NCBI RefSeq assembly: GCF_000737315.1
Contig: NZ_JMCB01000003.1
Coordinates: forward strand, 992,001 to 1,056,000
Origin: Hyalangium minutum
Lineage (GTDB): Bacteria > Myxococcota > Myxococcia > Myxococcales > Myxococcaceae
DNA: 64,000 bases
Direction of reading: 5' to 3'
Shown here: positions 3,326 to 21,756 of the stretch, one piece after another
Layout: each line of letters starts with the position of its first letter
How positions within the stretch are numbered: the first letter of the stretch is position 1
Translations under genes and position numbers: made by a program
Notes under the pieces: generated by a model
Seen by the model: the letters and a program-made list of their open reading frames with translations, nothing else
Told to the model about the DNA's origin: nothing
Databases searched by the model: none

Positions 3326-3748
3326 TCAGACGCTCTGGCCCTGGCGCTTGGCGAGCACCAGGTTCACGAAGGTCTTCACGGAGAAGAGGCTGAGGATCTG
3401 CGCGGGGCGCAGCCCGGGCTGGATGTGCGAGGCGGCCTCGGGCATCAGCTCCCGGAGCCGGGCGAGCCCTGTCTCGGAGATGACGCCGCCAGGCGCGAAC
3501 TCCTCGTCCGACATGGTGCCGCGGGCGGCGCGCTCCATCTCGCCGCGCGTGATCTGGATGTCGAAGGCCCGCTCCAGCTTGAAGACGATGTCCAGGAAGT
3601 CGAGCGACTCGGCGCCCAGGTCTCCCATCAGGAGGGTCTCGAGCTTCACCTCGGAGAGATCCCGGGCGAGGGCCTCGGCAACCACCTCGCGGACCTGCTG
3701 CTCAATCTTCTGGACCTCGGCTGCGGACGCTGGGACTGCGGCGGTCAT
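3326..3748 (-). CDS. Acyl carrier protein, long form with an internal insertion
   Basis: DLGAESLDFLDIVFKLERAFDI phosphopantetheine-Ser motif; ATG at 3748 overlaps the upstream stop. Confidence 0.9.
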   Translation of the reverse strand: MTAAVPASAAEVQKIEQQVREVVAEALARDLSEVKLETLLMGDLGAESLDFLDIVFKLERAFDIQITRGEMERAARGTMSDEEFAPGGVISETGLARLRELMPEAASHIQPGLRPAQILSLFSVKTFVNLVLAKRQGQSV

Positions 3749-4419
3749 GTCTGGGCCTCCCGAGGCTCGGGGCCATCCTCGAACCACGTCACCACCTGTG
3801 CAAGGGGCTTGCGCGGCTGCTTGGCGGGCAGCTCGTCTGGATACCCCACCGCGATGGCTCCGACCATCTTCCAGGGCTCCCGGATGTCCAGCAGCCGCTG
3901 GATCTCATCGCGGCCAATCATCGGTCCGGACATCCAGCAGGCGCCGAGCCCCTCGGCCTGGGCCTGGAGCAGCAGGGCCATGCACGCGGCACTGGTGGAG
4001 CAGAGCTCGGCCTGCATGGACGCGGCGGTGTGGAACTTCGTGGGGTCCCCTCCCCCGGAGGCCACGAGGTTGGCGATCAGGTCCGGATAGATGCGGTACT
4101 GAGGGACGATAATGGCCGCGGCCGTGGCGAGGGGCTCGTGGAAGAAGTCGCCGTACTTGCCGAAGTCCTCGGCGTGGTGGCCCTGGCGGATGATGGCCTT
4201 CATCTCCTCGGCGCGGGTGCGGACGGCCTCGGTGAGGCGCTGACGGAGCGCGGCCTGGGTGACGACCGCGAAGCGCCAGGGCTGGCGGTTGGTGGGAGAC
4301 GGTGCCGTCACCGCGGCCTGCATCAGGCGCTCCAACGCCTCGCGAGGAACGGGCCGGGCCGTGAAGGCGCGCACGCTCCTGCGGTGAGAGAGGAGATCGA
4401 GAAAAGACTCGCCGTTCAT
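3745..4419 (-). CDS. Nitroreductase-fold FMN oxidoreductase
   Basis: RRSVRAF, APSPTNRQPWRF, LLLQAQAEGLGACW, AIAVGYP motifs; ATGA overlaps on both sides. Confidence 0.9.
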   Translation of the reverse strand: MNGESFLDLLSHRRSVRAFTARPVPREALERLMQAAVTAPSPTNRQPWRFAVVTQAALRQRLTEAVRTRAEEMKAIIRQGHHAEDFGKYGDFFHEPLATAAAIIVPQYRIYPDLIANLVASGGGDPTKFHTAASMQAELCSTSAACMALLLQAQAEGLGACWMSGPMIGRDEIQRLLDIREPWKMVGAIAVGYPDELPAKQPRKPLAQVVTWFEDGPEPREAQT

Positions 4420-5159
4420 TCGAGCTTGAACCCTCCATCCACGTTCCACACCTGACCGGTGACGTAACTGGCATCGCTGGAGCACAGGAAGGCCACCACT
4501 TTCGCCACCTCCTCGGGTTTGCCGGGCCGCCGCATCAGGATGCGCCGCTTTACCTCATCCGGCGCGAGCGCGAGGATATCCCGGGTCATCTCGGTCTCGA
4601 TGACGCCGGGGGCCACGGCGTTCGCCCGGATGTTCCTCGGCGCCAGTTCCACGGCCAAGGCGCGGATGAAGGACTCCACTGCGCCCTTGGTGGCCGCATA
4701 GAGGCTCTGTCCCCGTCCCGGCCGCTGCCCCGCGACGGACGAGAGCGCCACGATGGAGCCTCGCCGCCGGCCAATCATCCGCTTCGCCACTTCCCGGCAG
4801 CAGTGCACCACTCCGTCCAAGTTGACGGTGCGGACAGCAGTCAAATCCTCAGGGGTGCTCGCGCCCAGGAGCGTGTCCCGGGTGACGCCGGCGCCACAGA
4901 CGAGCACGTCGATGGGGCCCAGCTGGCGCTCCGTCTCCTCGATGAGACGAACCACCTGAGCTGAGTCGGAGACGTCGGCCTGATGCAAGAACGCCCGCTG
5001 GCCGAGTGCCTCGACCTCGCGAACCACCTCGGCGGCACGCGCCCCCTGCTCACGAAAGTTGATGCCCACGGAGTAGCCACGCCGGGCCAGCTCGAGGACG
5101 ACAGCTCGGCCGATTCCGCGCGAGCCCCCCGTCACCAGAGCCACACCCCTCTCGCTCAT
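4416..5159 (-). CDS. fabG: 3-oxoacyl-ACP reductase (FabG-like SDR)
   Basis: TGGSRGIG, LSSVAG, YAATK, NAVAPGVIET motifs. Confidence 0.88.
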   Translation of the reverse strand: MSERGVALVTGGSRGIGRAVVLELARRGYSVGINFREQGARAAEVVREVEALGQRAFLHQADVSDSAQVVRLIEETERQLGPIDVLVCGAGVTRDTLLGASTPEDLTAVRTVNLDGVVHCCREVAKRMIGRRRGSIVALSSVAGQRPGRGQSLYAATKGAVESFIRALAVELAPRNIRANAVAPGVIETEMTRDILALAPDEVKRRILMRRPGKPEEVAKVVAFLCSSDASYVTGQVWNVDGGFKLE

Positions 5160-5243
5160 GCTTCACCTCGCGGAAGCTTTGCCAACACCGGATAACCAGC
5201 GGCACAGCAGGGAAGCCCCGCGGCAGTCCCGGGCGGTTTCCCA

Positions 5244-5496
5244 GAACCGGTCTGCTTGTCAGACCAGTTCACGCCAAAGCGGACCGGGAGCGCCCCCTCT
5301 GCCGGGTACAGCCGCCGTGAACCGGTCTGCTTGTCAGACCAGTTCGCACCGAACCGGCCCGGGGGAGCCCCCTCCACCGGGTACAGCCGCCGTGAACCGG
5401 TCTGCTTGTCAGACCAGTTCACGCCAAAGCGGACCGGCAGAGCCCTTCCCTGCCGTGCGCGGCCACCGTGAACCGGTCTACTTGTCAGACAGGTTG
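5244..5496. repeat. Tandem array with ~75-bp period and a 27-bp palindromic core (GAACCGGTCTGCTTGTCAGACCAGTTC)
   Basis: Core starts at 5244, 5319, 5394 and 5470 (last copy degenerate); GGTCTG-N5-CAGACC inverted repeat; spacers share sequence with each other. Confidence 0.9.
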
Positions 5497-5499
5497 GGC

Positions 5500-6702
5500 T
5501 CATGCGCGCTCCGCCGGGCTCGGCTGTCCGCTGGGGCTGCCAATATGCACTCCGCCTACAAGTCCGGGTGCCCCCGTGCAGAGGGCCAATGCCGAACGCG
5601 CCGTCGTGGGGGTGGGCTCTCGAACAGGCAGGAGCGATCCCTCGGCGGGCTCGCGCAGCCCGGCGATGGGGGGCAGCACACCTCTCCGCAGACAGTTCGC
5701 CAAGGCGATGGTCTGTACCAGCGGTGCCGCGGCCCCCAGCTGTCCGAACGCTGCTTGTACCGCCGTGAGTTGCGCCCCCTGTCCAAGCAGGGCCCCCAGC
5801 ACGGACCTTTCCGCAGCATCCAGCGCAGGAAGGGCTCGGCCGGAGCCGTCAACGACCGCGTCCGCTCGAGGCAGGCGCGCGGCGACGGCAGCGAGTGTCT
5901 CCGGGCCAGGCTCGGAGGCGTGGCTGTCCGCGCCATCAGCCGCGGAGATGGTCGCCAGCGCCCCCTTCGCTCCTGGACGCTGGAGCACCAGCGCCGCAGC
6001 GGCCTCCCCCGGCACAAAGCCTCGCGCGTGGAGATCATACGGAGCGGCCAGGTTCGCAAGGTCCCCTGTGGTCGCGGCTCCCCGGGCGGCCAGGTCCACC
6101 AGCGTCTCCGGTTCGAGCAGCGAGTCGTAGGCGAACACCAGCGCCACATCGATGCTCTCAGCTTCGAGTGCCCGAATGGCCGCAGAGAGCGCCTGGGCGC
6201 CTGCAGTGGCTCCTCCATAGGTGGCACCATCGCCTCGTGCGGAGAGGTCCGCAGCCAGGAGCGCGTGCGCGTTGTTCGAGAGGTGCTTGAGCATCCAGTA
6301 CGGGTGAATGCGCTTGAGCCCGCGCTCCCACGTACCGCCTTGCCCCGGTTGCTGCGCGGAGAGCCCCTCCATCATGTCGTCCCAGTGGGCCCGCAGTCCG
6401 CCATAGCCGCAGAAGATCCCCAGCCGCTCACCCGAGGCCTCGCAACCGTGACCACGGGCCAGCTGGAGTGCTTCATGCGCGGCCTCCAGCCCGAAGAGCC
6501 CCATCCTTCGCAGGAAGCGCGCGTGCTTCGAGCGCTGTGGCTGGGAGAGGATCGGTGCTCCCAGCCGGCAGGCGTAGGTACGGGTCTCGAAGCGCAGCTT
6601 GTCCGTCGCCGCGCGCTCTCCGGCGAGGAGCCGGCCCACGGCGGTGTCCACCGAGTCACCCAACGGCGTGCGCCATGCCCAGCCGAGGACGTCCGCGCTC
6701 AT
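5500..6702 (-). CDS. Ketosynthase-like protein lacking catalytic residues (chain-length-factor-like)
   Basis: Thiolase/KS fold signatures (HWMLKH-LSNNAH-like segment, GFVPGEAAAALVL); the Cys site reads GATAG and the His site reads AFGQLG; ATG at 6702 overlaps the upstream TGA. Confidence 0.8.
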   Translation of the reverse strand: MSADVLGWAWRTPLGDSVDTAVGRLLAGERAATDKLRFETRTYACRLGAPILSQPQRSKHARFLRRMGLFGLEAAHEALQLARGHGCEASGERLGIFCGYGGLRAHWDDMMEGLSAQQPGQGGTWERGLKRIHPYWMLKHLSNNAHALLAADLSARGDGATYGGATAGAQALSAAIRALEAESIDVALVFAYDSLLEPETLVDLAARGAATTGDLANLAAPYDLHARGFVPGEAAAALVLQRPGAKGALATISAADGADSHASEPGPETLAAVAARLPRADAVVDGSGRALPALDAAERSVLGALLGQGAQLTAVQAAFGQLGAAAPLVQTIALANCLRRGVLPPIAGLREPAEGSLLPVREPTPTTARSALALCTGAPGLVGGVHIGSPSGQPSPAERA

Positions 6703-7982
6703 GCCGCTCTCCCGAGGATGATCGTTGCGTTCTGTCCCCCGAAACCGAAGGAGTTCGACAGCACTGCCTCCACTCGCGCCTCGCGGGGACGCTCGCCGAT
6801 GATATCGATGTCGCAGTCGGGATCGCGCTCGCGGTGGTGCGCGGTCCCCGGAAGGCAGTCGCCCAGGAACGGCAGAAGGGACGCCGCGACCTCGATGGCC
6901 CCCGAGGCCGCCATCAGGTGCCCCACCGCTCCCTTGATGGAGCTCACCGGCACATCCCCCAGAACCTCGCGAATGGCCCGGGCCTCCGCGGGATCGTTGA
7001 GGGGCGTGCCCGTGCCATGGGCATTCACATAGCCGATGTCCCTGGCAGAGAGCCCCGCGCGCTTCAGCGCTTGCTGCATGGCCTTCCGTGCCATCGAGCC
7101 GTCCGGCAGAGGAGCCGTGGTCTTGTAGGCGTCCTGGGTGCTTGCCCAGCCGAGAATGCGCGCCAAGGGACGGGCACCTCGGGCCAGGGCACGCTCCTCG
7201 GACTCGACGACGAACATGGCGGCCCCCTCGCCGATGGCCAGCCCGTCCCTGCGTCGATCGAAGGGCCGGCACGCATCCGGCTCGGCCCGAGGAGAGGGAG
7301 CGCCCAAGCGGGACATTCCCCCCAGCCCCAGCGGATTCACCATCGAGTCACTCGCGCCGCAGAGCACCCGCGTGGCCGCACCGCGCTCAATGAGCGAGGC
7401 GGCATGTGCCACCGCGAGCGTACCGGCTGCGCACGCGGAGACGTGGGGCACCACCGGTCCCGTCAGGCCCAGCATTTTCACGAGCCCGTCCGCGCAGAGA
7501 TCGATCCGCGAGCGGAAGCGCACCCGAGGCAACGGCGCTCCCGGCTCGGCCACCCAGTCAATGGCCGCGCGCGTGCCCTCTTTGCGCAGCAGCGGGCCAA
7601 AGTCCTCCAGGAAGGCCTGCTCCAAGCCCAAGGCCATCGACAGCCAGGTATCGCTCGCATCCTCGCCGCAGCCGGCCTGGTGCCAAGCCTCCAGCGCGGC
7701 GACCCACCCGAAGCCAATCTTCCGGTCTCGCAGTGCTCCGGAAGCGTCCCAGTCCTCCAGCAGGGACTCCGGCAAGCGTCCCCCGAGGTACTCCCGGAGC
7801 CACGCACCGTCCGTCCTGAGCACCGGCACCTCCCCAGCGACGCGCGTCGGGAAGCCCGAGGCATCGAAGTGGTGGATGGGTCCCACGGCGGCACGGCCCT
7901 CGCCGAGTGCATCCCAGAAGGCCCGGGCTCCCACCCCCAGGGCCGAAACCACGCCACAGCCCGTGATGACGGCCTGGCTCAC
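6699..7982 (-). CDS. Beta-ketoacyl-ACP synthase II (FabF-like), catalytic triad intact
   Basis: SACAAG (Cys), NAHGTGT (His), SIKGAVGH (Lys/His), NSFGFGGQN. Confidence 0.93.
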   Translation of the reverse strand: MSQAVITGCGVVSALGVGARAFWDALGEGRAAVGPIHHFDASGFPTRVAGEVPVLRTDGAWLREYLGGRLPESLLEDWDASGALRDRKIGFGWVAALEAWHQAGCGEDASDTWLSMALGLEQAFLEDFGPLLRKEGTRAAIDWVAEPGAPLPRVRFRSRIDLCADGLVKMLGLTGPVVPHVSACAAGTLAVAHAASLIERGAATRVLCGASDSMVNPLGLGGMSRLGAPSPRAEPDACRPFDRRRDGLAIGEGAAMFVVESEERALARGARPLARILGWASTQDAYKTTAPLPDGSMARKAMQQALKRAGLSARDIGYVNAHGTGTPLNDPAEARAIREVLGDVPVSSIKGAVGHLMAASGAIEVAASLLPFLGDCLPGTAHHRERDPDCDIDIIGERPREARVEAVLSNSFGFGGQNATIILGRAA

Positions 7983-9022
7983 GAGACCACCTCCCGTGCC
8001 AGTCCCACCAGCCCTACATCTCCATCCGGGCCCACGACGAGCACAGCCGCGCGGCGAATGGCTCCGTCCTGCAGCAGGTCCAGGGCCGCCACGGTCGCCA
8101 ACGCAGCGGACGCCGCCAGGGACTCACCGAAGAGCGCGGAGGCATCGAACACAGACTCGGGACACACGGGGAGAGCCAACTCCCGTGCAGCCTCTCTCCG
8201 GTTTGGCGTGGCCGTGAGCACCACGCACTCTGGCTCGAGGGCATCCAGGGATCGCCTCGCCGATTCGAGCGCTGGCGCCAGCCCCTGCTGTCCCGGGTGC
8301 ACTTCACAGCGATTCAGAAAGCCCAGTGGCTGCGCATGGCCAGGAGCCGCAAGCGCCAGGAGCGCGGCCCCTTCTCCCGGCACCACGCCCGCGCCTTCTT
8401 CTCGGCTCAGTTCTGCCCATGTCACCGGGTGCAGCGCCGAGTCCGCTCCGCCGCTGAGTGCCACCTCGCAGTCGCCCACTGCCACCGTATGGCGCGCCTC
8501 CGCCAGAGCGAGCACCGTGCCGCTCCCTCGCGAGAAGATCGCCGCGTTCGGTCCCCTCAGTCCCTCACGGATAGCGGCGTGGCAGAGGGTGTAGTTGTTC
8601 ATCAACTGGAAGGCGAAGAGCGGATTGCACGCGCCAAGCCCCCCGGTGCCAAACCGCCCGAGGTCGAAGTGCTGCTCCAAGAAGCTCGCGTCGAGCATCG
8701 CCTCGAGTTCCTCCATCGCACCGCCCGAGGCACCCACTCCGAGAAAGAAGCCCGTCTCCTCTCGCGGCAACGTTGGCGACTCCTGAAAGAGGCTCCGAGC
8801 CGCCACGCAAGAGAGGCGCGCTCCTCGGCTCATCAGCTTGAGCAACCTTGGCTCCACATCCTGGGCTGTGGGCAGTGCTGGCACTTGCGCAGCGAGGACT
8901 CCTCCCAGCGCCTTACAGGAAGTGGCCGCTGTGTCGCCTGCACGCACGGCCTTGCCCAGACCGCGCCAACCGATGCCCTGGGCAGTGACAGCGGTGGCGG
9001 CGACCACGGCCACGGGCCTCAT
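7979..9022 (-). CDS. Ketosynthase-like protein lacking catalytic residues (chain-length-factor-like)
   Basis: KS N-terminal fold (FQLMNNYTLCH, VVPGEGAALL); Cys site reads SRGSG; no HGTG motif; ATGA coupling on both sides. Confidence 0.78.
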   Translation of the reverse strand: MRPVAVVAATAVTAQGIGWRGLGKAVRAGDTAATSCKALGGVLAAQVPALPTAQDVEPRLLKLMSRGARLSCVAARSLFQESPTLPREETGFFLGVGASGGAMEELEAMLDASFLEQHFDLGRFGTGGLGACNPLFAFQLMNNYTLCHAAIREGLRGPNAAIFSRGSGTVLALAEARHTVAVGDCEVALSGGADSALHPVTWAELSREEGAGVVPGEGAALLALAAPGHAQPLGFLNRCEVHPGQQGLAPALESARRSLDALEPECVVLTATPNRREAARELALPVCPESVFDASALFGESLAASAALATVAALDLLQDGAIRRAAVLVVGPDGDVGLVGLAREVVS

Positions 9023-10218
9023 GCGCGGACCACCACCAGGCTGGTGTTCGCCCCACCGAATGCGAACGCATTGACGAGCGCCGAGCCCACCCGCTTGCGC
9101 AGGGCCTGGCCCTGAACGTGGGGAAGCTCGCAGCGAGGATCCGGGTTGCGCAGGCCCGCGGTCGGAAGCACCTCGTCCCGCTCCAGCCCATGTACCGCGC
9201 AGAGGAAGCCCAGCGCTCCCGCTCCCGCGATCCAATGACCGAGCGCCCCTTTCACCGAGCTCACATGGGCCTCGGCTAGCCGCGCTCCCAGCACCCGCCG
9301 GAGCGCTCGGGCCTCCACCTCGTCATTGAGCTGCGTCGAGGTGCCGTGCGCCTGCACGAAGTCCACGCCCTCAAGCCGGGCCTCCCGAAGCGCGGCTCGC
9401 ATCGCCGCCGCCGCACCTTCTCCCTCGGGATCCGGCGCGGTGAGGTGCCACGCATCGAGCGATCGCCCCACCCCCGCCACCGAGGCCACGGCATCGCCCT
9501 TCTCGGCGGAGAGCACCACCATCGCCGCGCCCTCCCCCACGACGAAGCCATCCCGGTGTGCATCGAAGGGACAAGACACGCCCCGAGCCGACAGCGCTCC
9601 CAACAGCCCGAACCCGGCCAGCATCAGCGGATCCACGTCCGCCCCAACGCCGCCACACAGCGCCACGTCCACTTCACCCCGGCGGATGGCTCGCACGCCC
9701 TCCGCGATGGCCGCAGCCCCCGAAGAGCAAGCCAGGGACAGCGTCTCACAGGGACCTCGAGCTCCGAACTCTCCCGCCAGCATCGACGCCACCGCCGCAG
9801 GAGACACCGCCGCCGCGTCAATCCGAGGAGCCAGTTCCCGCGCGCGTTGCCCGAACGCCTCATGGTCGAAGCGAGCACCGCCTCCAGCGGCCTGCGCCAG
9901 CGCCAGCACCGTGGAGAAGCTCGCACGGCCGGACTCCGCTCCCATGAAGACACCGATGCGCTCCGGTGCGGCACGGAGCCATGCATGAGCCCATGCCTCC
10001 CGAGCAGCTCGCAAGGCGAACTCCCGGCGGCGATCCTCCGCGCCCTCGGCGAGGCCTCGCACCGCAGCCGCCACCTGACACGGGAAGCCCTCGACGTCGA
10101 AGTGCTCCACCCTCGAAATCGCGCTCTCTCCCCGCGCCAGTGCCGCCACGGTGCTCGGCCAGTCCAGCCCGAGAGACGACACCGCGCCCACACCTCGGAC
10201 GAAGGCCTCACGCCGCAT
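9019..10218 (-). CDS. Beta-ketoacyl-ACP synthase II (FabF-like), catalytic triad intact
   Basis: SLACSSG, QAHGTST, SVKGALGH, NAFAFGGAN. Confidence 0.93.
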   Translation of the reverse strand: MRREAFVRGVGAVSSLGLDWPSTVAALARGESAISRVEHFDVEGFPCQVAAAVRGLAEGAEDRRREFALRAAREAWAHAWLRAAPERIGVFMGAESGRASFSTVLALAQAAGGGARFDHEAFGQRARELAPRIDAAAVSPAAVASMLAGEFGARGPCETLSLACSSGAAAIAEGVRAIRRGEVDVALCGGVGADVDPLMLAGFGLLGALSARGVSCPFDAHRDGFVVGEGAAMVVLSAEKGDAVASVAGVGRSLDAWHLTAPDPEGEGAAAAMRAALREARLEGVDFVQAHGTSTQLNDEVEARALRRVLGARLAEAHVSSVKGALGHWIAGAGALGFLCAVHGLERDEVLPTAGLRNPDPRCELPHVQGQALRKRVGSALVNAFAFGGANTSLVVVRA

Positions 10219-10248: not shown

Positions 10249-10716
10249 TCACGGCTCCTCCGCCGCTCCGGTCAACCAGACGTTGAGCACCTCGCGACGG
10301 CGCGCGCGCAGCTTCTCGCTCTTCACCTCGGCGAAGGCGAACGTGAGCTCGGCCTCGGCCGCGAGCTGGCCCTCCACCGTGGCCGTCGCGCGCACCTGGC
10401 CTCCCTCCTCCCGCGCGGTGATGAGGCGAGCCTCCAGCTCCAGCTTGTCTCCCGGACGCACCATCCTGCGGAACTTCGTCCGATCGATCATCGTCAGCAG
10501 TGCGTGCAGATCGTTGCGTCCGCGCTCGCGCATGGTCGCCTCCACCAGCACGCCGCCGAGCTGCGCCAAGGCCTCGACGATGAGCGCTCCGGGCATGATG
10601 GGGTGGCCTGGAAAGTGGTCGGCGAAGATGTCGTCCGAGAGCGAGACGCACTTGACGCCGTGAGCCACCTCCGCGGGCACCAGGCGCGTGATGCGGTCGA
10701 GCAGGACGTAGCGCAC
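10249..10716 (-). CDS. fabZ: 3-hydroxyacyl-ACP dehydratase (FabZ/FabA hotdog fold)
   Basis: LLDRI, FADHFPGHPIMPGALIVEALAQ, KFRRMVRPGD; GTG start at 10716 with GGAGG upstream. Confidence 0.9.
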   Translation of the reverse strand: MRYVLLDRITRLVPAEVAHGVKCVSLSDDIFADHFPGHPIMPGALIVEALAQLGGVLVEATMRERGRNDLHALLTMIDRTKFRRMVRPGDKLELEARLITAREEGGQVRATATVEGQLAAEAELTFAFAEVKSEKLRARRREVLNVWLTGAAEEP

Positions 10717-10906: not shown

Positions 10907-12655
10907 ATGGAATGCACGAGCTGCGCGCCGATCGAGGGAGTCGTCCAGCGGCCGGACAAGCCCCACACCTTCCTGCACCACGAACCCTCGACGTGCGAGA
11001 AATGCGCTGAGCCCGTGGAGGCCCGCGTCGTGCTGCGCAAGGGTGAAGTCTGGGCGCTCAAGTTCTGCACCACCTGCGGACAGTCGGAGGCCAAGGTCGC
11101 CGACAGCGCGGACGCGTACCTGGAGGCCTGGGTGAAGCGCGGCGAGGTGGCGGACGACGCGCGCGATCACCTCTTCAAGCACACCACCTCTACCTGCCCC
11201 CAATGCCTCGCGCTGCTGCAGGCCGAGGTCGTCATCCGCCGGGGCAAGGTCTACTTCAAGAAGAACTGCCGCAAGTGCGGGCCGTCGGAGGCACTGGTGA
11301 GCGAGGACGCGCGCTACTACGTGCGCGCCTACACCTTCGCTCGCGCGGGCACCGAGCCCCTGAAGTTCGCCACCGAGGTAAAGCACGGCTGCCCCACCGA
11401 CTGCGGCACCTGCTCGGACCACGAGCAGCACACGTGCCTGCCCATCGTCGAGGTGACGGACCACTGCAACCTCGAGTGCCCCATCTGCATCGTCAACAAC
11501 CAGTACTCCAACCACATCGAGCTGGCGGCGTTCCAGCGCATCGTCGACGGGATGGTGGAGCGCGAGGGCCAGCTCGAGTCCCTGGCGCTCTCGGGCGGCG
11601 AGCCCACCAGTCACCCGGAGATCCTCAAGCTGCTGGAGATCGCCAACCGGCCGGAGATCGGCCGCGTGGTGCTCATCACCAACGGCCTGCGCCTGGGCCG
11701 GGACCGCGCCTTCGCCGAGGCCATCAAGGCCAGCGGCGCCTACGTGGGCCTGCAGCTCGACGGCTTCACCGCTGACACGCACGAGAAGATCCGCGGCAAG
11801 GATCTCACCAAGGACAAGGTGGCGGCGCTGAAGATGCTCGAGGAGTTCAACATCCCCACGCAGATCATCTTCGTGGCCACGCGCGGCGTGAACGAGCACC
11901 AGATCGGCCAGGCCGTGCAGCTGCTCATGGAGAAGGACTTCGTCCTCTCGCTCAACTTCCAGCCGGCCGCGTACACGGGCTTCGGCGGAGGCGCCTTCAA
12001 GCACGACCCGATGGATCGGCTCACCATCCCGGGTGTCATCCAGCGCATCGAGGAACAGACGGGCGGCAAGCTGAAGGTGAGCGACTTCTCGCCCCTGCCC
12101 TGCTCACATCCGCAGTGCGTCTCGCTGACCTACCTCCTGAAGCTGAACGACGGCGCGTACATGCCCTTCGGGCGCTTCGTGGACTTCAAGCGCCACGGGA
12201 CGCTGCTGCGCTCGTCGGCCACGCTGGGAGCGTCGCCGGAGATCCATGACGCGCTGGAGGAGGTCATCCACGACGTCTTCGCCCGGCAGGACGAGGTGGA
12301 GCGCGGCGAGGACGTGCTCAAGGCGCTGCGGCGCTCGCTGGACGTGATGTTCCCGGACCGCAAGCTGACCAACAAGGAGTCCGTGCTCATCGGCGAGCAG
12401 CAGGCCAAGAGCATCTTCCTCCACCACTATATGGACCGGCACGACTTCGATCTGGAGCGGCTGCGCAAGTGCTGCCACCACTATCCCCAGGTGGATGGAC
12501 GCGTGATGCCGGCGTGCGGCTTCAACATGTTCCACCGTGGCGCCGCCAAGGGCCCGAAGACGGAGATCGCTCCCTGGGGCAAGAAGCCCTGGACGACGAA
12601 TCCTCCCGTCAACGCAGCGGGCCCGGCCTCCTTCAAGCTGCCGGTGTTGAAGTGA
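10907..12655 (+). CDS. Radical SAM enzyme, Tes/MJ0619 (GDGT-MAS)-like, with a duplicated N-terminal metal-binding domain
   Basis: CNLECPIC SAM-cluster motif preceded by GCPTDCGTCSDH; SGGEPT; C-terminal FDLERLRKCCHHY...DGRVMPACGFN; two TCxxC...CxxC repeats at the N terminus. Confidence 0.88.
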   Translation: MECTSCAPIEGVVQRPDKPHTFLHHEPSTCEKCAEPVEARVVLRKGEVWALKFCTTCGQSEAKVADSADAYLEAWVKRGEVADDARDHLFKHTTSTCPQCLALLQAEVVIRRGKVYFKKNCRKCGPSEALVSEDARYYVRAYTFARAGTEPLKFATEVKHGCPTDCGTCSDHEQHTCLPIVEVTDHCNLECPICIVNNQYSNHIELAAFQRIVDGMVEREGQLESLALSGGEPTSHPEILKLLEIANRPEIGRVVLITNGLRLGRDRAFAEAIKASGAYVGLQLDGFTADTHEKIRGKDLTKDKVAALKMLEEFNIPTQIIFVATRGVNEHQIGQAVQLLMEKDFVLSLNFQPAAYTGFGGGAFKHDPMDRLTIPGVIQRIEEQTGGKLKVSDFSPLPCSHPQCVSLTYLLKLNDGAYMPFGRFVDFKRHGTLLRSSATLGASPEIHDALEEVIHDVFARQDEVERGEDVLKALRRSLDVMFPDRKLTNKESVLIGEQQAKSIFLHHYMDRHDFDLERLRKCCHHYPQVDGRVMPACGFNMFHRGAAKGPKTEIAPWGKKPWTTNPPVNAAGPASFKLPVLK

Positions 12656-13392
12656 AGCTGCTGGAGGGACGCACGGCGCTCGTCACGGGCGGCTCCCGCG
12701 GGCTGGGACGAGCCCTCTGCCAGATCCTGGCGCGAGAGGGCGCCAACGTGGCCTTCTGCTACTCACGCTCCGAGCAGCACGCCACCGAGACGCTCGCCCT
12801 CATCCAGGCGCAGGGCGTGCGCGGCTGGTCCTATAAGGTGAACGTGCTCGACAAGCCGGCGGTGCAGCAGATGGTGCGCTCGCTGGAGCAGGAGTCGGGC
12901 GGCCTCGACATCCTCGTGAACAACGCGGGCGTGGGCCAGGTGGTCCCGCTGGCGCTCATGGAAGAGGAGGACTGGGACCGGGTGATGAACATCAACGTCA
13001 AGGGCGCATTCCTCGTCACCCAGGCCGCCATGCGAGGGATGATCCACCGCAAGCGCGGCCGCATCCTCAACATCAGCTCGCTGGCCGGGGTGAAGATGAT
13101 GCAGGCCCCCGTGCACTACTGCGCGGCCAAGGCCGCCCTCAAGGGCTTCACCGAGGCGCTGGCCAAGGAGCTCGGCCGCTACGGCGTCACGGTGAACTGC
13201 CTGGCGCCCGGCGTCCTGGAGGAAGGCGTCTCCGGGAACCTGCCGCAGCCGCGCCTCGAGGAGTACCTGCGCAACTGCGCACTCGGGCGCGTGGGCACAT
13301 TGGCGGAGGCGGCCGAGGTGGCGGCCTTCCTCGTGTCGGATCGCAACAGCTACATGAACGGAGCCACACTCGTCCTCGACGGGGCGGTGTGA
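12652..13392 (+). CDS. SDR / 3-oxoacyl-ACP reductase-like
   Basis: TGGSRGLG, LVNNAG, NISS, YCAAK; GTG start overlaps the radical SAM stop (GTGA). Confidence 0.88.
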   Translation: MKLLEGRTALVTGGSRGLGRALCQILAREGANVAFCYSRSEQHATETLALIQAQGVRGWSYKVNVLDKPAVQQMVRSLEQESGGLDILVNNAGVGQVVPLALMEEEDWDRVMNINVKGAFLVTQAAMRGMIHRKRGRILNISSLAGVKMMQAPVHYCAAKAALKGFTEALAKELGRYGVTVNCLAPGVLEEGVSGNLPQPRLEEYLRNCALGRVGTLAEAAEVAAFLVSDRNSYMNGATLVLDGAV

Positions 13393-13404: not shown

Positions 13405-14898
13405 ATGCCGGATGGATCCGCGGTGGCGGAGCGGCTGCTGCATGAGACGACCAGCCTGTGCCGACAGTGCAAGAACGCGCTGCCCGCGCAGGTGGTGGCG
13501 GTGGGCTCCGAGGTGCACATGCGCAAGCAGTGCCCCACACACGGTGCCCAGTCGGTGATGCTCTCGGACGACGCAGCCTGGTACGAGCGCACGCGCGCCA
13601 TCGCCACCCCGCCCGCGCCTCCGGTGGCTCGCAAGGCGGTGGAGCACGGCTGTCCGTTCGACTGCGGGGCCTGCAGCACCCACGAGCAGAAGGTCCGCCT
13701 GCCGGTGGTGACCATCACCAGCGCCTGCAACCTCAACTGCCCCATCTGCTACGTGCACAACAAGAACGAGGGCGCGTTCCATATGACGCTCGAGTCCTTC
13801 GACCAGATCCTCGGGCATCTGGTGAAGGACCACGGCGGCGAGCTGGACCTCATCAACTTCACGGGCGGCGAGCCCACCGTGCACCCGCACTTCCTCGACT
13901 TCATCGAGCACGCGCACAAGGCCGGGGCCCACCGCGTCACCCTCTGCACCAACGGCATCAAGCTCGCGCAGGACGAGCGGCTCGTGCAGCGGCTGGGAGA
14001 ACTTCAGGCGCGTGTGGCGCTCTCGTTCGACTCGTTCGAGCCCTCCGTGGACCAGGCGATGCAGGGGGCGAAGCTCCTGGACATCAAGCTGCGCTGTCTG
14101 GATCTGCTCGATAAGCACAACGTGGACTGCGCGCTCATCCCGGTGATGACGCGCGGGTACAACGATCACGAAGTCGGCCGCATCATCCGGCTCGGGCTGG
14201 AGCGCTCCTGTGTGCGGCACCTGGAGATCCACACCATCACGTATACCGGGCAGGGCGGCGTCAGCTTCGACCGCTCGGGACGCATCTCCATGCACGAGGT
14301 GCTGACGCGCATCCAGGAGACCACCGGGGGCATGCTGCGCGAGGAGGACTTCGTACCCTCCCCCTGCGCGCACCCGCTCTGCTACCAGATCGCATACATG
14401 CTGCTGGATCCGGAAGGCGGCCCGCCGGTGCCGTTCGCCCGCTTCATGCCGCGCGAGGAGTTCTACGCGGTGCTCGGCGAGCGCCTGTACCTAGAGCCCA
14501 GCCCGCGTCTGGAGACGGCGATGCACGATGCCATCGACCGGCTCTGGGCCTTTGGTGGCGACGAGGCGGAGCGCACGCTGCGGATGCTGAAGCACCTGCT
14601 GGGCGTGCTGTTCCCGCAGGGCCGGGTGCTGAGCCGGCACGAGGGGCTGCGGGCCTCGGAGCGGTGGGTGAAGGCCGTCTACGTGCACTCGCACATGGAC
14701 GAGGAGACCTTCGACGTGGAGCGAGTGATGCGCTGCTGTGACTCCAACTGCTACCCGGATGGGAGCACCATCCCGGTGTGCAACTACAACGTGCTGTACC
14801 GCGAGAAGGAGGCCCGCTTCATGCGCGCGCCGAAGACCTGGAACGAGCGGAGCGGCGGCTTCAAGCTCCCCGTCTTCCCTGGGGAGCGCGTCAAGTGA
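13405..14898 (+). CDS. Radical SAM enzyme, Tes/MJ0619-like (second paralog)
   Basis: TTSLCRQC...RKQCPTHG, GCPFDCGAC, CNLNCPIC, TGGEPT, FDVERVMRCC...DGSTIPVCNYN. Confidence 0.88.
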   Translation: MPDGSAVAERLLHETTSLCRQCKNALPAQVVAVGSEVHMRKQCPTHGAQSVMLSDDAAWYERTRAIATPPAPPVARKAVEHGCPFDCGACSTHEQKVRLPVVTITSACNLNCPICYVHNKNEGAFHMTLESFDQILGHLVKDHGGELDLINFTGGEPTVHPHFLDFIEHAHKAGAHRVTLCTNGIKLAQDERLVQRLGELQARVALSFDSFEPSVDQAMQGAKLLDIKLRCLDLLDKHNVDCALIPVMTRGYNDHEVGRIIRLGLERSCVRHLEIHTITYTGQGGVSFDRSGRISMHEVLTRIQETTGGMLREEDFVPSPCAHPLCYQIAYMLLDPEGGPPVPFARFMPREEFYAVLGERLYLEPSPRLETAMHDAIDRLWAFGGDEAERTLRMLKHLLGVLFPQGRVLSRHEGLRASERWVKAVYVHSHMDEETFDVERVMRCCDSNCYPDGSTIPVCNYNVLYREKEARFMRAPKTWNERSGGFKLPVFPGERVK

Positions 14899-14906
14899 CG
14901 CCTCGC

Positions 14907-15638
14907 ATGGAGGGGAAGCGCTGCCTCGTCACCGGAGGCTCGCGCGGACTGGGGCTGGCCATCTGCCAGGAGCTGGCGCGCGCGGGGGCTCGGGTGGCCT
15001 TCACGTACTCGAAGAACACGCGCGATGCGGAGGAGGCCCAGGCGCGCATCACCGAGGCAGGCTCGGCGCCACTCGTCTTCCAGGGCTCGGTGGCGGACGC
15101 CGCGCACGTGAAGAAGACGGTGGCCTCCGTGGTGGAGGCCTGGGGCGGCGTGGACGTGCTGGTGAACAACGCGGGGGCGAACCAAGTCCTTCCCATTGCG
15201 CTCATTGAGGAGGCGGACTGGGACCTGGTGATGGACGTCAACGTCAAGGGCACGTACCTGTTCTCCCGAGCGGTGCTGCGGCCGATGATCCGGGCACGGG
15301 CCGGGAAGATCCTCAACATCGGCTCGTTCGCCTCGGAGCGCGTGGTGGAGGCACCGGTGCACTACGCGGCGGCCAAGTCCGCACTGCGCGGGTTCACCGA
15401 GGCGCTCGCGCGGGAGGTAGGGCGCTACTCCATCCAAGTGAACCTGCTGGCGCCGGGGTTGCTGGATGCGGGGTTGTCGCGCTCACTGCCGCAGCACCGG
15501 CTGAACGAATACCTGAGCCAGTGCTCGCTGGGGCGGCTCGGCTCGGTGGAGGAGATCGCGCGCATGGCGGTGTTCCTCGTATCGGACGAGAACACGTTCA
15601 TGACCGGCGCCAAGGTCGTCGCAGACGGTGGCCTGTAG
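14907..15638 (+). CDS. SDR / 3-oxoacyl-ACP reductase-like
   Basis: TGGSRGLG, LVNNAG, YAAAK; alternative GTG start at 14895 overlaps the radical SAM stop. Confidence 0.88.
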   Translation: MEGKRCLVTGGSRGLGLAICQELARAGARVAFTYSKNTRDAEEAQARITEAGSAPLVFQGSVADAAHVKKTVASVVEAWGGVDVLVNNAGANQVLPIALIEEADWDLVMDVNVKGTYLFSRAVLRPMIRARAGKILNIGSFASERVVEAPVHYAAAKSALRGFTEALAREVGRYSIQVNLLAPGLLDAGLSRSLPQHRLNEYLSQCSLGRLGSVEEIARMAVFLVSDENTFMTGAKVVADGGL

Positions 15639-15647: not shown

Positions 15648-16955
15648 ATGACGACCCGAGTCGAGGACATCCTGCGGCGGGGGTTCGAGGACTTCCGCGA
15701 GTTCGTCAACCCGCTCATCGCCCTGCGCGCCGAGGTCGCCGGGGAGCCCCTGCGCGTCGTGCACGCCCAAGAGGGCCGCCTGGAGGACGCCGAGGGCCAC
15801 CTCATCGAGGACTTCCACGGCACTCAGGCCTTCGGGCACCGCAACCCCACGATCGCGGCGGCGGTGCGCGAGTTCCTGGACACGGACTCGCCCTCCTGGT
15901 TCCCATCGCGCGTCAACCCGTACGCGGGGAGCCTGGCGCGGCGCCTGTGCGAGCGCACGGGGCACTACTCCAATGCCTTCTTCGCGAGCTCGGGCAGCGA
16001 GGCCGTGGAGGCGGCACTCAAGCTGGCGCGGGCCGTGACGCGCAGGCCACGGGTGCTTTCGCTCGATCGCGCCTACCACGGCTGCACGATGGGGAGCTGC
16101 GGGCTGATGATGCCCGGGACGTTCCGGGACCCCTTCGAGCCGCACCTGCCAGGAGTGGGTCCCCTGCCCTTCGGAGACATCGACGCGCTCTCGAAGGCCC
16201 TCGCTCAGAAAGATGTGGCTGCGGTGGTGGTGGAGCCCATCCAGCTCGAAGGTGGCGTGCGGCCCCTGTCACCCACGTACATCGATGCGCTGTGCGAGCT
16301 GACCCAGCGACACGGCACATTCCTCGTGGCCGACGAGGTGCAGACAGGCCTGGGGCGCACTGGCCGATTCCTCGCGAGTGAGCGCTGGCCGCGCCGTCCC
16401 GAGTGCGTGCTGCTGGCGAAGCACCTCGGCGGAGGGCTCCTGCCGATCTCGGCGATGCTGACCCGGCGCGACCTGTTCGAGACCGCGTACGGGAAGAACT
16501 TCGAGACAGCCGAGGCCCACAACTGCACCTTCAGCGGGAGCGCGATGGTGTGCGTCGCGGCGCATGCGGCGTTGGACCTGTTGACGGACTCCCTTATCGA
16601 GCGCGTTCGAGACGTGGGAGCCAGCTTCCGAGCCGGGCTCACGGAAGCGCTGGGGTCGCTGCCCCTCTTCGAGGAGATCCGAGGCGAGGGACTGGTCGCG
16701 GGCATCGTGCTGAAGCCGACGGAGCACCCGTGGCTGTCCTTCGAGCACTTCGGCATGGAGGACCTGGCGCACCGGCCCACCGTGGGACTGCTGCTGTGCC
16801 ACCGGCTGTATAAGCGCGGTTATTTCTGTTTCGTCTGTGGACACGACTGGAGCGTGCTGCGGCTGCAGCCGCGCTTCACCATCGCGGAGGAAGCGCTGGC
16901 CACCTTCACCCGGGTTGCCCGGGAGGAACTGGAGTTCCTGTGCAATCTCGACTGA
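15648..16955 (+). CDS. Class-III PLP-dependent aminotransferase
   Basis: SSGSEAVEAALK, AYHG, VVVEPIQLEGG, LVADEVQTGLGRTG, AKHLGGG (PLP Lys). Confidence 0.92.
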   Translation: MTTRVEDILRRGFEDFREFVNPLIALRAEVAGEPLRVVHAQEGRLEDAEGHLIEDFHGTQAFGHRNPTIAAAVREFLDTDSPSWFPSRVNPYAGSLARRLCERTGHYSNAFFASSGSEAVEAALKLARAVTRRPRVLSLDRAYHGCTMGSCGLMMPGTFRDPFEPHLPGVGPLPFGDIDALSKALAQKDVAAVVVEPIQLEGGVRPLSPTYIDALCELTQRHGTFLVADEVQTGLGRTGRFLASERWPRRPECVLLAKHLGGGLLPISAMLTRRDLFETAYGKNFETAEAHNCTFSGSAMVCVAAHAALDLLTDSLIERVRDVGASFRAGLTEALGSLPLFEEIRGEGLVAGIVLKPTEHPWLSFEHFGMEDLAHRPTVGLLLCHRLYKRGYFCFVCGHDWSVLRLQPRFTIAEEALATFTRVAREELEFLCNLD

Positions 16956-17665
16956 ATCCTCCCAAGGCGCTGGTGTTCGGAGGCACAGGCTCGGTGGGTG
17001 AGCATGTCCTCCGGGGCCTGGCTCGCGCGAACGTTCCCACAGCCTTCACCTGGAACCAGTCCCGCGAGCGGGCGCACGCCCTGGCGAGCGAACTCTCGAT
17101 GCGCCCGGTGCAGGTGGATCTCTCGGACGCCGCAGCGACGCGCGCAGCACTTCGAGTCCTGCGAGAAGAGGGCTTCGTCCCCAGCCTGTTCATCCACTGC
17201 GCGGGAGTAAACCAAGGCGCCTCGCTCGCGGACATCACTGACGAGAAGTGGTCCAAGGCGATGGCGGTGAACTGCCAGTCCGCCTTCATCGCTTGCCAGG
17301 AACTGGCGCCTGCGATGGCACAGGCCGGTGAGGGCCACTTCGTGTTGGTGGGAGCGCTAGACCGGACGCAGTCAGCGCCCTCGCCCGTGCACTTCGCGGC
17401 ATCCCAGGGAGCCCTGTCCGCCATGGCGATGGCCCTGGCCAAAGAACTGGGCCCCAAAGGCGTGCGCATCAACGTGGTAGCACTGGGGCTTCTGGAGAGC
17501 GGCCTGTCGCGCGAAGTCGGCGAGAAGCTCGTGAGTGACTACAAAGGCTTCAGCGCGCTCCGCCGCCTCGGCCGTCCCGAGGAGGCAGCAAAGGCCATCC
17601 TGTGGCTCGCGCTCGAGAACACGTACATGAACGGCAAAGTGTTGCCCGTGAACGGCGGTATCTGA
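16940..17665 (+). CDS. SDR-fold protein with a degenerate active site
   Basis: FGGTGSVG Rossmann motif; HFAASQ replaces YxxxK; C-terminal VLPVNGG. Confidence 0.8.
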   Translation: MQSRLNPPKALVFGGTGSVGEHVLRGLARANVPTAFTWNQSRERAHALASELSMRPVQVDLSDAAATRAALRVLREEGFVPSLFIHCAGVNQGASLADITDEKWSKAMAVNCQSAFIACQELAPAMAQAGEGHFVLVGALDRTQSAPSPVHFAASQGALSAMAMALAKELGPKGVRINVVALGLLESGLSREVGEKLVSDYKGFSALRRLGRPEEAAKAILWLALENTYMNGKVLPVNGGI

Positions 17666-17889
17666 CTCCTACCAGCGGAACATGATGGTTCCGGTGCGAA
17701 TCAAACCCGTGGCGCACTGCTCCTTGAGGACACAAACTCAGCACCCGATCAAAAGGCAATACCTGCACATCCAGATACTGATTATCATCATTTTTTTGGG
17801 GAAAGCACGGCTTGCATGGACCTTGCGTTACCTTGACTAATGCGCTCAAAATGCGATAGATGCCTCTGGCGAATTCTCCAGGGGGCGTC

Positions 17890-20294: not shown

Positions 20295-20313
20295 CCGGCC
20301 CTCCTGCGTTCGG

Positions 20314-21756
20314 TCAGAGCCGCCCAGGCCCCAACGTGGTCAGCGAAGGCGCCGGCCGCTGCTGGAAGCGCCCGTCCCGGTTCCGGTACAGCACGTTATA
20401 CGCGCACGATGGGATGTTGCTCCCATCTGGCTCCCGGATCCCCACGCAGCACTGGCGGATTCGATCGGTATCGAACGTCTCCTCATCCATGTGCGAGTGC
20501 AGGTAGATCGCCTTCGAGCTTCGCTCCGCCAACTTCAGCCGCTCGGCTGCACTCACCCCTGGCGCCATCAGCCGCCCCACCAGATCCTTCAGCGTCGCCA
20601 GCACCGCTCCGGAGTCCTCACACGCCAGCTCCCCGGACCAGAGGCGGTTGATCACATCCTGCAGCCGCTGCTCCATCTCCGCGCTCGGCTCCAGGTACAG
20701 CATCCCGCCCAGCATCGCCCGCAGGTCCGCCCGGTCCATGAACCGCGGATACGGCAGCCACCGCCCGTCCCCCAGCTTCAGCAGATATGTCACCTGGTAG
20801 CAGAGCGGGTGCGCCGCCGGCGACGGCACGAAGTCCGTCACCCGAAGCTGCCCCCCTGTCTGCTGCTCCAGGTCCACCAGCACGTCATAGGGCGTGTACC
20901 GCGCCTTCCGATCGAACTTCGTCCCGCCCTGCCCCGTGAACGTCATCGTGTGGAGCTCCACGCTCCGGATGAAGTCCTTCTCCAGGCCCAGCTTCACGAA
21001 GTCGCCCACCTCCGAGTCGTTGTACCCCCGCGCCAGCACCGGCAGCAGCGTCGTGTCCACCGCGTGCTTCTCCAGCAGCTGCAGCACCTTCAGCTTCGAC
21101 TCCAGCAGCCGCCCGCCCAGCATCTGCTTGTTCGTCTCGGGCTTGAACGAGTCAAACGAGAGGATGACCCGCGCCTCCAACTGCGCCAGCCGCTCCAGCA
21201 GGTACTCGTCCTTCAGGAACCGCAGCCCGTGCGTGGACACCGTGATCCGGTGGATCCCCTCCTCGCGGCACAGCTCCACCAGCCGCTCGAACGCCGGGTG
21301 CTGCGTAGGCTCCCCGCCCGTCAGGTTGATGATCCGCTTGTCCGGCGCCGCCCGCCGCAAGTGCCCCAGGATGGCACGCAACTGCTCCTCGGACATGTGG
21401 TACGCGCCCGCGTTCCGGTTGTGCGTGTAGCAGATGGGGCAGTCCAGGTTGCACGCCGACGAGATCGGCACGATCGGCAGCTGCACCTTCTGCTCGTGCC
21501 GCGTACACGGGCCACAGTCGTACGGGCATCCCTGTGACACCTGCTTCAGCGCCACCGGAGCCTGCAGCGCTGGCGCCTCCTGCATGATCGACTCGTACCA
21601 GTCCGCATTCGAGGAGATCAGCGCCTCGGACGCGCCGTGCTCCGGGCACCTCTTGCGCATCACGACCTGACCGTTGCTCCGCCAGAGCGTGGCCTCCACG
21701 CTGCGGAAGCACCGATCGCACAGGCCCGTCGTCGTCCGCAGCTGAGCATCCGCCAT
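20314..21756 (-). CDS. Radical SAM enzyme, Tes/MJ0619-like (third paralog)
   Basis: TTGLCDRC...RKRCPEHG, GCPYDCGPC, CNLDCPIC, TGGEPT, FDTDRIRQCC...DGSNIPSCAYN. Confidence 0.88.
   Translation of the reverse strand: MADAQLRTTTGLCDRCFRSVEATLWRSNGQVVMRKRCPEHGASEALISSNADWYESIMQEAPALQAPVALKQVSQGCPYDCGPCTRHEQKVQLPIVPISSACNLDCPICYTHNRNAGAYHMSEEQLRAILGHLRRAAPDKRIINLTGGEPTQHPAFERLVELCREEGIHRITVSTHGLRFLKDEYLLERLAQLEARVILSFDSFKPETNKQMLGGRLLESKLKVLQLLEKHAVDTTLLPVLARGYNDSEVGDFVKLGLEKDFIRSVELHTMTFTGQGGTKFDRKARYTPYDVLVDLEQQTGGQLRVTDFVPSPAAHPLCYQVTYLLKLGDGRWLPYPRFMDRADLRAMLGGMLYLEPSAEMEQRLQDVINRLWSGELACEDSGAVLATLKDLVGRLMAPGVSAAERLKLAERSSKAIYLHSHMDEETFDTDRIRQCCVGIREPDGSNIPSCAYNVLYRNRDGRFQQRPAPSLTTLGPGRL

Follow-up and report, generated by a model that had tools for sequence, protein, structure and literature searches.

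Radical S-adenosylmethionine (SAM) enzymes of the tetraether synthase (Tes) type, represented by MJ0619 and also called glycerol dialkyl glycerol tetraether–macrocyclic archaeol synthase (GDGT-MAS), have a fold for which a single, highly unusual reaction is known, the C(sp3)–C(sp3) coupling of lipid tails. Their family, IPR034474, has bacterial members of unknown function (PMC9433317), and the literature treats bacterial Tes homologues as untested candidates for the synthesis of branched GDGTs (brGDGTs; PMC8941075; PMC11868695; PMC13459092). Here, we describe a locus of the myxobacterium Hyalangium minutum in which three enzymes with this fold (rSAM1, rSAM2, and rSAM3) are encoded beside a fatty acid synthase (FAS) of type II and a class-III aminotransferase (AT). 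The locus lies at positions 3326–21756 of a 64,000-nucleotide stretch of contig NZ_JMCB01000003.1 (hereafter the window), where an earlier prediction made from the DNA alone (the original prediction) had proposed an undescribed system. It is a real, conserved, and uncharacterized locus, which joins known kinds of enzyme, each from an individually ordinary family, in an undescribed way. Full-text searches of open-access papers found no report of this cluster, or of a Tes-fold radical SAM enzyme combined with a ketosynthase/chain-length-factor (KS/CLF) synthase and an aminotransferase, and no characterized pathway that matches it.

Evidence that these genes belong together comes from other genomes. 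A scan of one genome per species identified 150 relatives of rSAM2, and 76 loci were examined with flanks of ±10 kb, their gene content being established by tblastn with all window proteins and from precomputed gene calls. By tblastn, the complete gene set is present in more than 30 loci, found in Kofleriaceae, Haliangiales, Sorangium, Labilithrix, and Hyalangium, as well as in bins labeled "Pseudomonadota," Burkholderiales, and Acidobacteriota. With more than 30 independent loci showing the set in syntenic order, a chance association is excluded, and the synteny search that the original prediction had called for revealed a conserved, co-evolving unit. Its distribution is mainly in Myxococcota, with additional occurrences in Massilia and a few other phyla; the nearest relatives of rSAM2 come from metagenome-assembled genomes (MAGs) of Hyalangium, at 92–94% identity. 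In metagenomes, relatives at E ≤ 1e-20 number 1312 for rSAM2 and 881 for rSAM1, and carry at most the label "radical SAM protein" or an automatic one.

In the usual layout, one long operon runs FabZ-KS1-CLF1-KS2-CLF2-SDR_a-NTR-ACP-rSAM2-SDR_c-AT-SDR_d (NTR, nitroreductase; SDR, short-chain dehydrogenase/reductase; ACP, acyl carrier protein), with rSAM1–SDR_b divergent from it and rSAM3 a few kilobases downstream; the ACP gene directly precedes rSAM2 in most of the complete loci. The window holds a rearranged form of this layout, in which a divergent intergenic region of 190 bp splits the minus-strand FAS operon (FabZ to ACP) from the plus-strand genes (rSAM1 to SDR_d). SDR_c follows rSAM2 in every locus of sufficient length, and SDR_b adjoins rSAM1 except in four loci (L036, L062, L073, and L075), which have an aminotransferase gene at that position. 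From these arrangements, the locus can be described as a conserved but modular unit, in which module A comprises the FAS genes with rSAM1–SDR_b, module B rSAM2–SDR_c–AT–SDR_d, and module C rSAM3 with a fatty-acid (FA) hydroxylase gene. The latter, missing from the list of the original prediction, begins 19 nt past the rSAM3 stop codon on the same strand and is found near rSAM3 in many relatives. The view that the locus is "built around three" radical SAM enzymes is thus right as to their number, but it hides a modularity that becomes visible in other genomes, where modules A and B separate.

Pfam and NCBIfam annotation confirmed the gene inventory first read from the sequence, namely an ACP, a FabZ, two KS pairs, four SDRs, a nitroreductase, a class-III aminotransferase, and the radical SAM genes (Table 1). 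The window has a GC content of about 68%, and open reading frames (ORFs) were filtered by third-position GC before annotation, Pfam covering positions 3326–23329. Exactly three Tes-like genes are present in the window, and the third was located, as predicted, about 2.6 kb past SDR_d, on the opposite strand. Tight coupling of the genes was equally apparent: stop and start codons overlap at seven junctions, as ATGA at KS1/CLF1, KS2/CLF2, SDR_a/NTR, and NTR/ACP (the ACP ATG at 3748 overlaps the NTR stop) and as GTGA at CLF1/KS2, rSAM1/SDR_b, and rSAM2/SDR_c. A GGAGG with a gap of 9–12 nt marks two more, and the FabZ start at 10716 is preceded by GGAGGG, which gives a protein of the same length as its orthologues.

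Table 1. Features of the Hyalangium minutum locus and its immediate surroundings (window coordinates).
Feature	Position	Strand	Basis
ACP, 140 aa	3326-3748	-	PF00550 and ACP NCBIfam models
NTR, nitroreductase-fold flavoprotein	3745-4419	-	PF00881 at 5.9e-34; NCBIfam matches all sub-cut-off
SDR_a, FabG-like 3-oxoacyl-ACP reductase	4416-5159	-	adh_short/KR match; TIGR01830 247 bits vs cut-off 298
Tandem repeat, 75-bp x3.3	5244-5490		TRF score 359; 84% matches
CLF2, ketosynthase homologue without Cys, His, His	5500-6702	-	weak ketoacyl-synt match
KS2, FabF-like ketosynthase, Cys-His-His intact	6699-7982	-	Pfam, NCBIfam, active-site residues
CLF1, ketosynthase homologue without catalytic triad	7979-9022	-	Pfam, active-site residues
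KS1, FabF-like ketosynthase, Cys-His-His intact	9019-10218	-	Pfam, NCBIfam, active-site residues
FabZ-type dehydratase, 155 aa	10249-10716	-	PF07977 and TIGR01750
rSAM1, GDGT-MAS-fold radical SAM, 582 aa	10907-12655	+	two PF23545 stretches and PF04055; 7TOL E 9e-60
SDR_b, FabG-like	12652-13392	+	Pfam/NCBIfam
rSAM2, GDGT-MAS-fold radical SAM, 497 aa	13405-14898	+	PF23545 and PF04055; AF2 model vs 7TOM/7TOL
SDR_c, FabG-like	14895-15638	+	Pfam/NCBIfam
AT, class-III (omega-type) aminotransferase	15648-16955	+	PF00202 at 2.9e-66
SDR_d, divergent FabG-like SDR	16940-17665	+	Pfam/NCBIfam; syntenic in about 60 loci
VWA-like ORF, 411 aa	17860-19095	+	weak VWA match only
Fatty-acid-hydroxylase-family (membrane di-iron) protein, 411 aa	19059-20294	-	PF04116 at 5.7e-31
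rSAM3, GDGT-MAS-fold radical SAM, 480 aa	20314-21756	-	PF23545 and PF04055; closest paralogue of rSAM2
Clostripain-family (C11) peptidase	21917-23329	+	divergent from rSAM3

That the three radical SAM enzymes belong to the GDGT-MAS/MJ0619 structural superfamily is solid, because their domains, their conserved ligands, and the full-length fold of rSAM2 all match. In each of them, an HMPTM zinc ribbon (PF23545) is combined with a radical SAM core (PF04055), with an extra N-terminal zinc ribbon in rSAM1, and the sole PDB match at E < 1e-30 for all three was GDGT-MAS (7TOL, about 1e-60). The motif set on which the family assignment had first been based (CxxC...CxxH/C, GCPxDCGxC, CxxxCxxC, and CC...DG..P.C..N) proved invariant in the three paralogues. 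We then aligned 120 orthologues from related loci with MJ0619, whose numbering is used here. In the rubredoxin-like site, C9, C12, and C33 are present in 120/120 orthologues, whereas H36, kept in the groups of rSAM2 and rSAM3, is replaced by Cys in 18/20 members of the rSAM1 group. The ligands of the [4Fe-4S]N cluster (C73, C77, C80, and H83) and the CX3CX2C motif are kept in 119–120 of the 120, and the C-terminal cluster cysteines C455 and C470 in all three groups as well as in 119/119 archaeal Tes. Similarly, the AlphaFold (AF2) model of rSAM2 (pLDDT 86.6, pTM 0.90) aligned with 7TOM/7TOL over its full length (495–510 columns) at a TM of 0.77; other radical SAM structures reached at most 0.36.

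The original prediction had gone further and placed the enzymes in the Tes/MJ0619 family. Fold, domains, and metal ligands uphold this at the level of the superfamily but, judging from the sequences, orthology with Tes is not supported by score, clade, hidden Markov model (HMM), or residues 439 and 459. The NCBIfam Tes model NF045702 gave 262, 234, and 233 bits for the three rSAMs vs. a cut-off of 450, and the model NF045646 of TrsS, an uncharacterized sister family of radical SAM (seleno)proteins, gave marginally higher values (279, 250, and 241 bits) that are also below its cut-off of 490. One selenoprotein preprint, found in a literature search for TrsS, offered nothing useful on the family as far as it was searched. 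Archaeal Tes were represented by 119 sequences retrieved with MJ0619, a sample of the 120 proteins nearest to it that is without the Tes of Crenarchaeota/Thaumarchaeota and the acidobacterial homologues. The original prediction had itself named a position outside the Tes/MJ0619 clade as evidence against it, and this is the position found: a midpoint-rooted neighbor-joining tree placed the 119 archaeal Tes in one monophyletic group and the three rSAM groups from bacteria in the opposite clade. An HMM built from these 119 sequences scored its own members at 713–859 bits vs. 185–311 bits for the bacterial rSAMs, whose identity to Tes is 27–30%. The three paralogue groups themselves are old and separately conserved, with 66–72% identity within groups and 34–49% between them (49% between rSAM2 and rSAM3, and 35% between rSAM1 and the others).

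The minus-strand genes encode a self-contained type II synthase, which comprises two pairs of a competent and a dead KS, a ketoreductase-type SDR, an ApeI-like FabZ, and its own ACP. In an active-site alignment, Cys-His-His is kept in KS1 and KS2, and all three residues are lost in CLF1 and CLF2 (A/G, G, and Q in the columns of CLF2). Each competent KS is thus encoded beside a triad-less homologue with overlapping stop and start codons, as in KS/CLF systems. PDB searches with ACP, FabZ, KS2, and CLF2 ranked ordinary FAS-II proteins first, the nearest chains to KS2 being FabF enzymes, and the FabZ orthologues of L078, L079, and L080 also match the ApeI-like family PF22818. The ACP, of about 135–140 aa, has a C-terminal extension of about 60 aa that is conserved in 39 orthologues and could be a docking element. 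Its pattern (…TRGEMER..RG.M…FAPGGVI…GL.RL.ELMPEA…GLRP..IL.LF.V.TF…) is without counterpart in ordinary ACPs. The NTR is syntenic in about 30 loci, and its best partial NCBIfam matches are the FbiB C-terminal domain and BluB; no FabI, FabK, or FabV is encoded in the locus. The best NCBIfam match of the aminotransferase is the PigE aminotransferase region, at 282 bits vs. a cut-off of 850.

Several neighbors that recur in relatives bear on where the product would go. A gene of the LPG_synthase_TM (MprF-flippase-like) type follows rSAM3 in 13 loci, including L073 (17090–18133), and none is present in the window; in Kofleriaceae and Haliangiales it lies between rSAM3 and the FA-hydroxylase gene, and module C also comes with a membrane acyltransferase (Acyl_transf_3, found in 14 loci) and MacB/FtsX permeases in these groups. 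An ABC-2 exporter adjoins module B in more than 20 loci. These flippase-like, ABC-exporter, and membrane acyltransferase genes suggest a membrane or exported lipid. In L080, an 8-Mb contig, the flippase-like gene (1958–2971) comes directly after the ACP of a module A that stands alone, and in Massilia sp. CCM 8733 (L079, 554–2970) the ACP is followed by an aminotransferase and then a radical SAM gene. This aminotransferase is called at 636 aa, about 200 aa longer than that of the window, and modules A and B are wired differently in this betaproteobacterium. Between SDR_d and Acyl_transf_3, Kofleriaceae and Haliangiales also encode a conserved 318-aa protein (about 320 aa across loci) without a Pfam match (L075, 14186–15142, and 13 other loci).

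The reading that we prefer, tentatively and at somewhat less than an even chance, is that of one conserved, modular locus for a lipid-type pathway, in which an ACP-bound chain would undergo a radical modification, likely the formation of a C–C bond, and then amination. A dedicated type II FAS, resembling a highly reducing polyketide synthase, would build the acyl chain on its own extended ACP, and the two KS/CLF heterodimers, each with one live and one dead subunit, would prime and elongate the chain. There is a precedent for such pairs in a non-aromatic, FAS-like system, the anammox amxFabF heterodimer, which decarboxylates malonyl-ACP (bioRxiv 10.64898/2026.05.19.726425). SDR_a would act as the ketoreductase and the ApeI-like FabZ as the dehydratase; NTR might contribute a flavin-dependent step, as an enoyl reductase or desaturase. 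The rSAMs would each take hydrogen from an unactivated carbon of the chain, with SDR_b as the partner of rSAM1, SDR_c, AT, and SDR_d as those of rSAM2, and the membrane di-iron hydroxylase as that of rSAM3. Our leading guess for their chemistry is radical C–C bond formation, as a cross-link or a ring closure. We favor it because the rSAMs retain the C-terminal cluster, which in GDGT-MAS carries a C–S intermediate, along with the full set of cofactors of that enzyme. An SDR/aminotransferase pair may then turn a hydroxyl or keto carbon into an amine, and the product would, to judge from the neighbors in other genomes, be an amino-lipid that stays in the membrane or is exported through it. The first interpretation is thus partly supported overall; the membrane-spanning, macrocyclic, or carbocyclic nature that it foresaw for the product is conjectural.

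A bolder version of this proposal, possible but doubtful, is a new class of bacterial lipids, in which a chain on a dedicated ACP is radically cross-linked or cyclized at unactivated carbons by three new Tes-fold specificities and aminated, giving macrocyclic or two-headed (bola-form) amino-lipids. By analogy, such compounds might be comparable to the macrocyclic archaeol of archaea or the "two-headed sphingolipids" of sponges. We know of no account of how the latter are made. Their biosynthesis was likewise not found in a review (PMC11767167).

A number of observations weigh against the pathway that we prefer. To our knowledge, no product, intermediate, or activity is on record for any member. 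Position 439 is Met in 119/119 archaeal Tes vs. His in 120/120 relatives here, and Tyr459, also present in 119/119 archaeal Tes, is lost in rSAM2 and rSAM3: the residue there is Tyr in 19/19 rSAM1-group proteins and Asn in 70/72 of the rSAM2 group, and varies among Ile, Met, and Val in the rSAM3 group (Ile in rSAM3 itself). Both residues are reported to be fully conserved across 1,000 archaeal homologues (PMC9433317); the C-terminal cluster has Met439 as its labile ligand, and Tyr459 lies near the substrate terminus. With these replacements, a sub-threshold score, and a separate clade, the C(sp3)–C(sp3) coupling of tails cannot be taken for granted in the rSAMs, whose chemistry may differ from it. 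The four SDRs are all generic FabG-like proteins, so that the roles assigned to them are guesses, and the window is without a thioesterase, thioester reductase, acyltransferase, or loading enzyme. In addition, the genome of Archangium violaceum (L078), which is complete, shows module A without B or C in flanks of ±10 kb. Module B stands by itself, adjoining an ABC-2 exporter, in isolates of Polyangium and Sorangium as well as in MAGs of Wallbacteria and Planctomycetota. Given this separate occurrence, the modules do not necessarily share a substrate.

The weakest link of the preferred pathway is the C–C bond-forming step, because His stands in place of Met439, two paralogues are without Tyr459, and the rSAMs are paired with SDRs, all of which fit a route of C–H activation, oxidation, and amination equally well. 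This is the most serious alternative, although we consider it rather unlikely: the pathway would be the same, but the rSAMs would form no C–C bonds and would activate C–H bonds for desaturation, oxidation, or sulfur insertion, after which an SDR would yield a ketone and, in module B, AT an amine, the net result being a remote C–H amination or oxygenation of a fatty chain. The coupling of rSAM to SDR genes through GTGA overlaps and adjacency supports it, as does the order rSAM2–SDR–AT–SDR, which fits a sequence of activation, oxidation, and transamination. In archaea, lipids are reportedly also desaturated or methylated by enzymes of the radical SAM class (bioRxiv 10.1101/2025.10.20.683597). 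However, radical SAM enzymes alone do not install oxygen and no hydratase is encoded, and the rSAMs keep the complete four-metal-site architecture of a C–C coupling enzyme.

The separate occurrence of modules also raises the possibility that A, B, and C are independent systems that are merely adjacent here, with B acting on ordinary cell lipids. The genomes with A alone (A. violaceum and L080) or with B alone beside its exporter are in its favor, and so is the variable spacer between B and C. Yet more than 30 loci, in several families and in two arrangements, have A and B side by side, usually with C as well, and in most of them the ACP gene runs directly into rSAM2; moreover, only flanks of ±10 kb were covered, so that the missing modules may lie elsewhere in these genomes, as in one MAG that has them on two contigs (L010 and L077). 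We regard such independence as improbable.

More improbable still is a cluster of the aryl polyene (APE) or ladderane kind, whose KS/CLF pairs would make on the ACP a polyene that either is a pigment or is cyclized to carbocycles by the rSAMs. The ApeI-like match of FabZ orthologues and the lack of an enoyl reductase fit this idea, and the combination of its own ACP, FabZ, a KS with a dead KS, a flavoenzyme, and a radical SAM enzyme parallels anammox Cluster I; antiSMASH also makes "ladderane" calls of unknown function in Myxococcota (PMC9902471). For APEs, however, Pfam found no starter-adenylating enzyme, thioesterase, methyltransferase, or LolA/MMPL export gene in the annotated span, the ApeI-like dehydratase being all that is shared, and for ladderanes, the anammox radical SAM enzyme is B12-dependent and accompanied by a phytoene-desaturase homologue, whereas no B12-binding or amine-oxidase/PDH domain was detected here. 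The Rattray 2009 paper on ladderane genomics makes no mention of myxobacteria, a nitroreductase, or an aminotransferase. A specific link to anammox ladderane proteins was rejected, since ordinary FAS-II proteins came first in the PDB searches and KS2 resembles ordinary FabF at least as closely as it does Iga11, the actinorhodin ketosynthase, or 9S5H_B/C, chains whose sole annotation is 3-oxoacyl-ACP synthase. Membership in a cispentacin pathway was also discarded, as the AmcB, AmcE, and AmcF models match only below threshold.

Least probable of all is that the Tes-like enzymes join two membrane fatty acids through their tails into a membrane-spanning lipid of the iso-diabolic-acid or brGDGT type, an idea that suits myxobacteria insofar as they produce iso-branched fatty acids and ether lipids. 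Bacterial Tes homologues have been proposed as brGDGT synthases (PMC8941075) and flippase-like genes are found near relatives' loci, but brGDGTs are nitrogen-free and an aminotransferase is a core conserved gene here, genes for ether lipids or for linkage to glycerol are absent from the locus, the enzymes are without Met439 and group apart from the Tes clade, and the coupling of ordinary membrane acyl chains needs no dedicated KS/CLF synthase.

Three further ORFs were considered and set aside. One of 115 aa between CLF2 and SDR_a (5156–5503, "orf115") is a translated tandem repeat without protein-level conservation. The repeat carries in each 75-bp unit the palindrome GGTCTG-CTTGT-CAGACC, occurs only here in the window, and is absent from Hyalangium relatives, where CLF2 and SDR_a abut; it may influence read-through into SDR_a, NTR, and ACP. 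The VWA-like ORF was not retained as a cluster member, being unconserved in relatives and having a GC content of 58%, vs. about 68% elsewhere; locus L002 has a different gene, of 371 aa, in its place, and the region looks like a variable or insertion spot. The C11 peptidase keeps its position only in the closest Hyalangium relatives (L003 and L004) and was excluded as well. Farther away, the window encodes a Ser/Thr kinase-AAA_16-GAF-HATPase protein of 1775 aa (37135–42462), followed by a MauG-type di-heme peroxidase, a metallophosphoesterase, and a SoxA/TsdA-type cytochrome c (42514–45709), all of which appear ordinary for myxobacteria and unrelated to the cluster.

To a fold with one known reaction, the locus adds three old bacterial subfamilies with a defined genetic context, and since each has its own ACP or tailoring partner, their substrates are experimentally approachable. 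More generally, metagenomic surveys count bacterial "Tes homologues" as candidate makers of brGDGTs, which serve as palaeoclimate biomarkers (PMC8941075; PMC11868695). The rSAMs match MJ0619 at about E 1e-60, so that the loose BLAST cut-offs of such surveys would probably include proteins of this kind, and a large share of the "Tes homologue" matches in Myxococcota and Proteobacteria may be unrelated to brGDGTs, because these enzymes belong to an aminotransferase-containing pathway and have no Met439. Met439 vs. His439 offers a simple discriminator. With cultured carriers (A. violaceum, Massilia, Polyangium, and Sorangium) and an abundant family, a new class of lipids or natural products is within reach.

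Among described systems, the class-III aminotransferases PigE (of the prodigiosin intermediate MAP) and the AMT domains of iturin and mycosubtilin synthesis act on the keto or aldehyde function of acyl chains; unlike these, the aminotransferase here is stand-alone, without a thioester-reductase domain. The very-long-chain fatty acid cluster of rhizobia (acpXL-fabZXL-fabF2XL-fabF1XL-adh-lpxXL) resembles our locus in its dedicated ACP, its FabZ, its two FabF homologues, and its dehydrogenase, and this AcpXL cluster serves to make a special, long acyl chain for the envelope; it is without a radical SAM enzyme and an aminotransferase, and its LpxXL acyltransferase is absent here. Another point of comparison is Mss, the bacterial membrane-spanning lipid synthase of Thermotoga, which we take to be a separate radical SAM family. 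We know of no report that associates Mss with a dedicated FAS or an aminotransferase. Mss has been proposed to couple fatty-acyl tails (reviewed in PMC13459092).

The closest parallels to the synthase are the highly reducing type II systems of the KS/CLF kind (ApeO/ApeC of aryl polyenes, Iga11/Iga12 of ishigamide, and the anammox amxFabF2/amxFabFmut), in which a KS is likewise coupled to a triad-less partner and works with a dedicated ACP, a dehydratase of the FabZ/ApeI-like type, and a FabG-like ketoreductase. In contrast to these, our locus has two KS/CLF pairs, radical SAM enzymes of the Tes fold instead of the B12-dependent type, and an aminotransferase, and the starter, release, and export genes of APE clusters are absent. 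The radical SAM enzymes themselves are closest to GDGT-MAS/Tes (MJ0619; 7TOL/7TOM), with which they share a rubredoxin-like zinc ribbon, a [4Fe-4S]N domain, a radical SAM core, and a C-terminal cluster domain in the same order. Unlike archaeal Tes, they are embedded in an ACP/KS/aminotransferase operon and not in archaeal isoprenoid lipid metabolism; as for GDGT-MAS/Tes, their substrate is probably a lipid.

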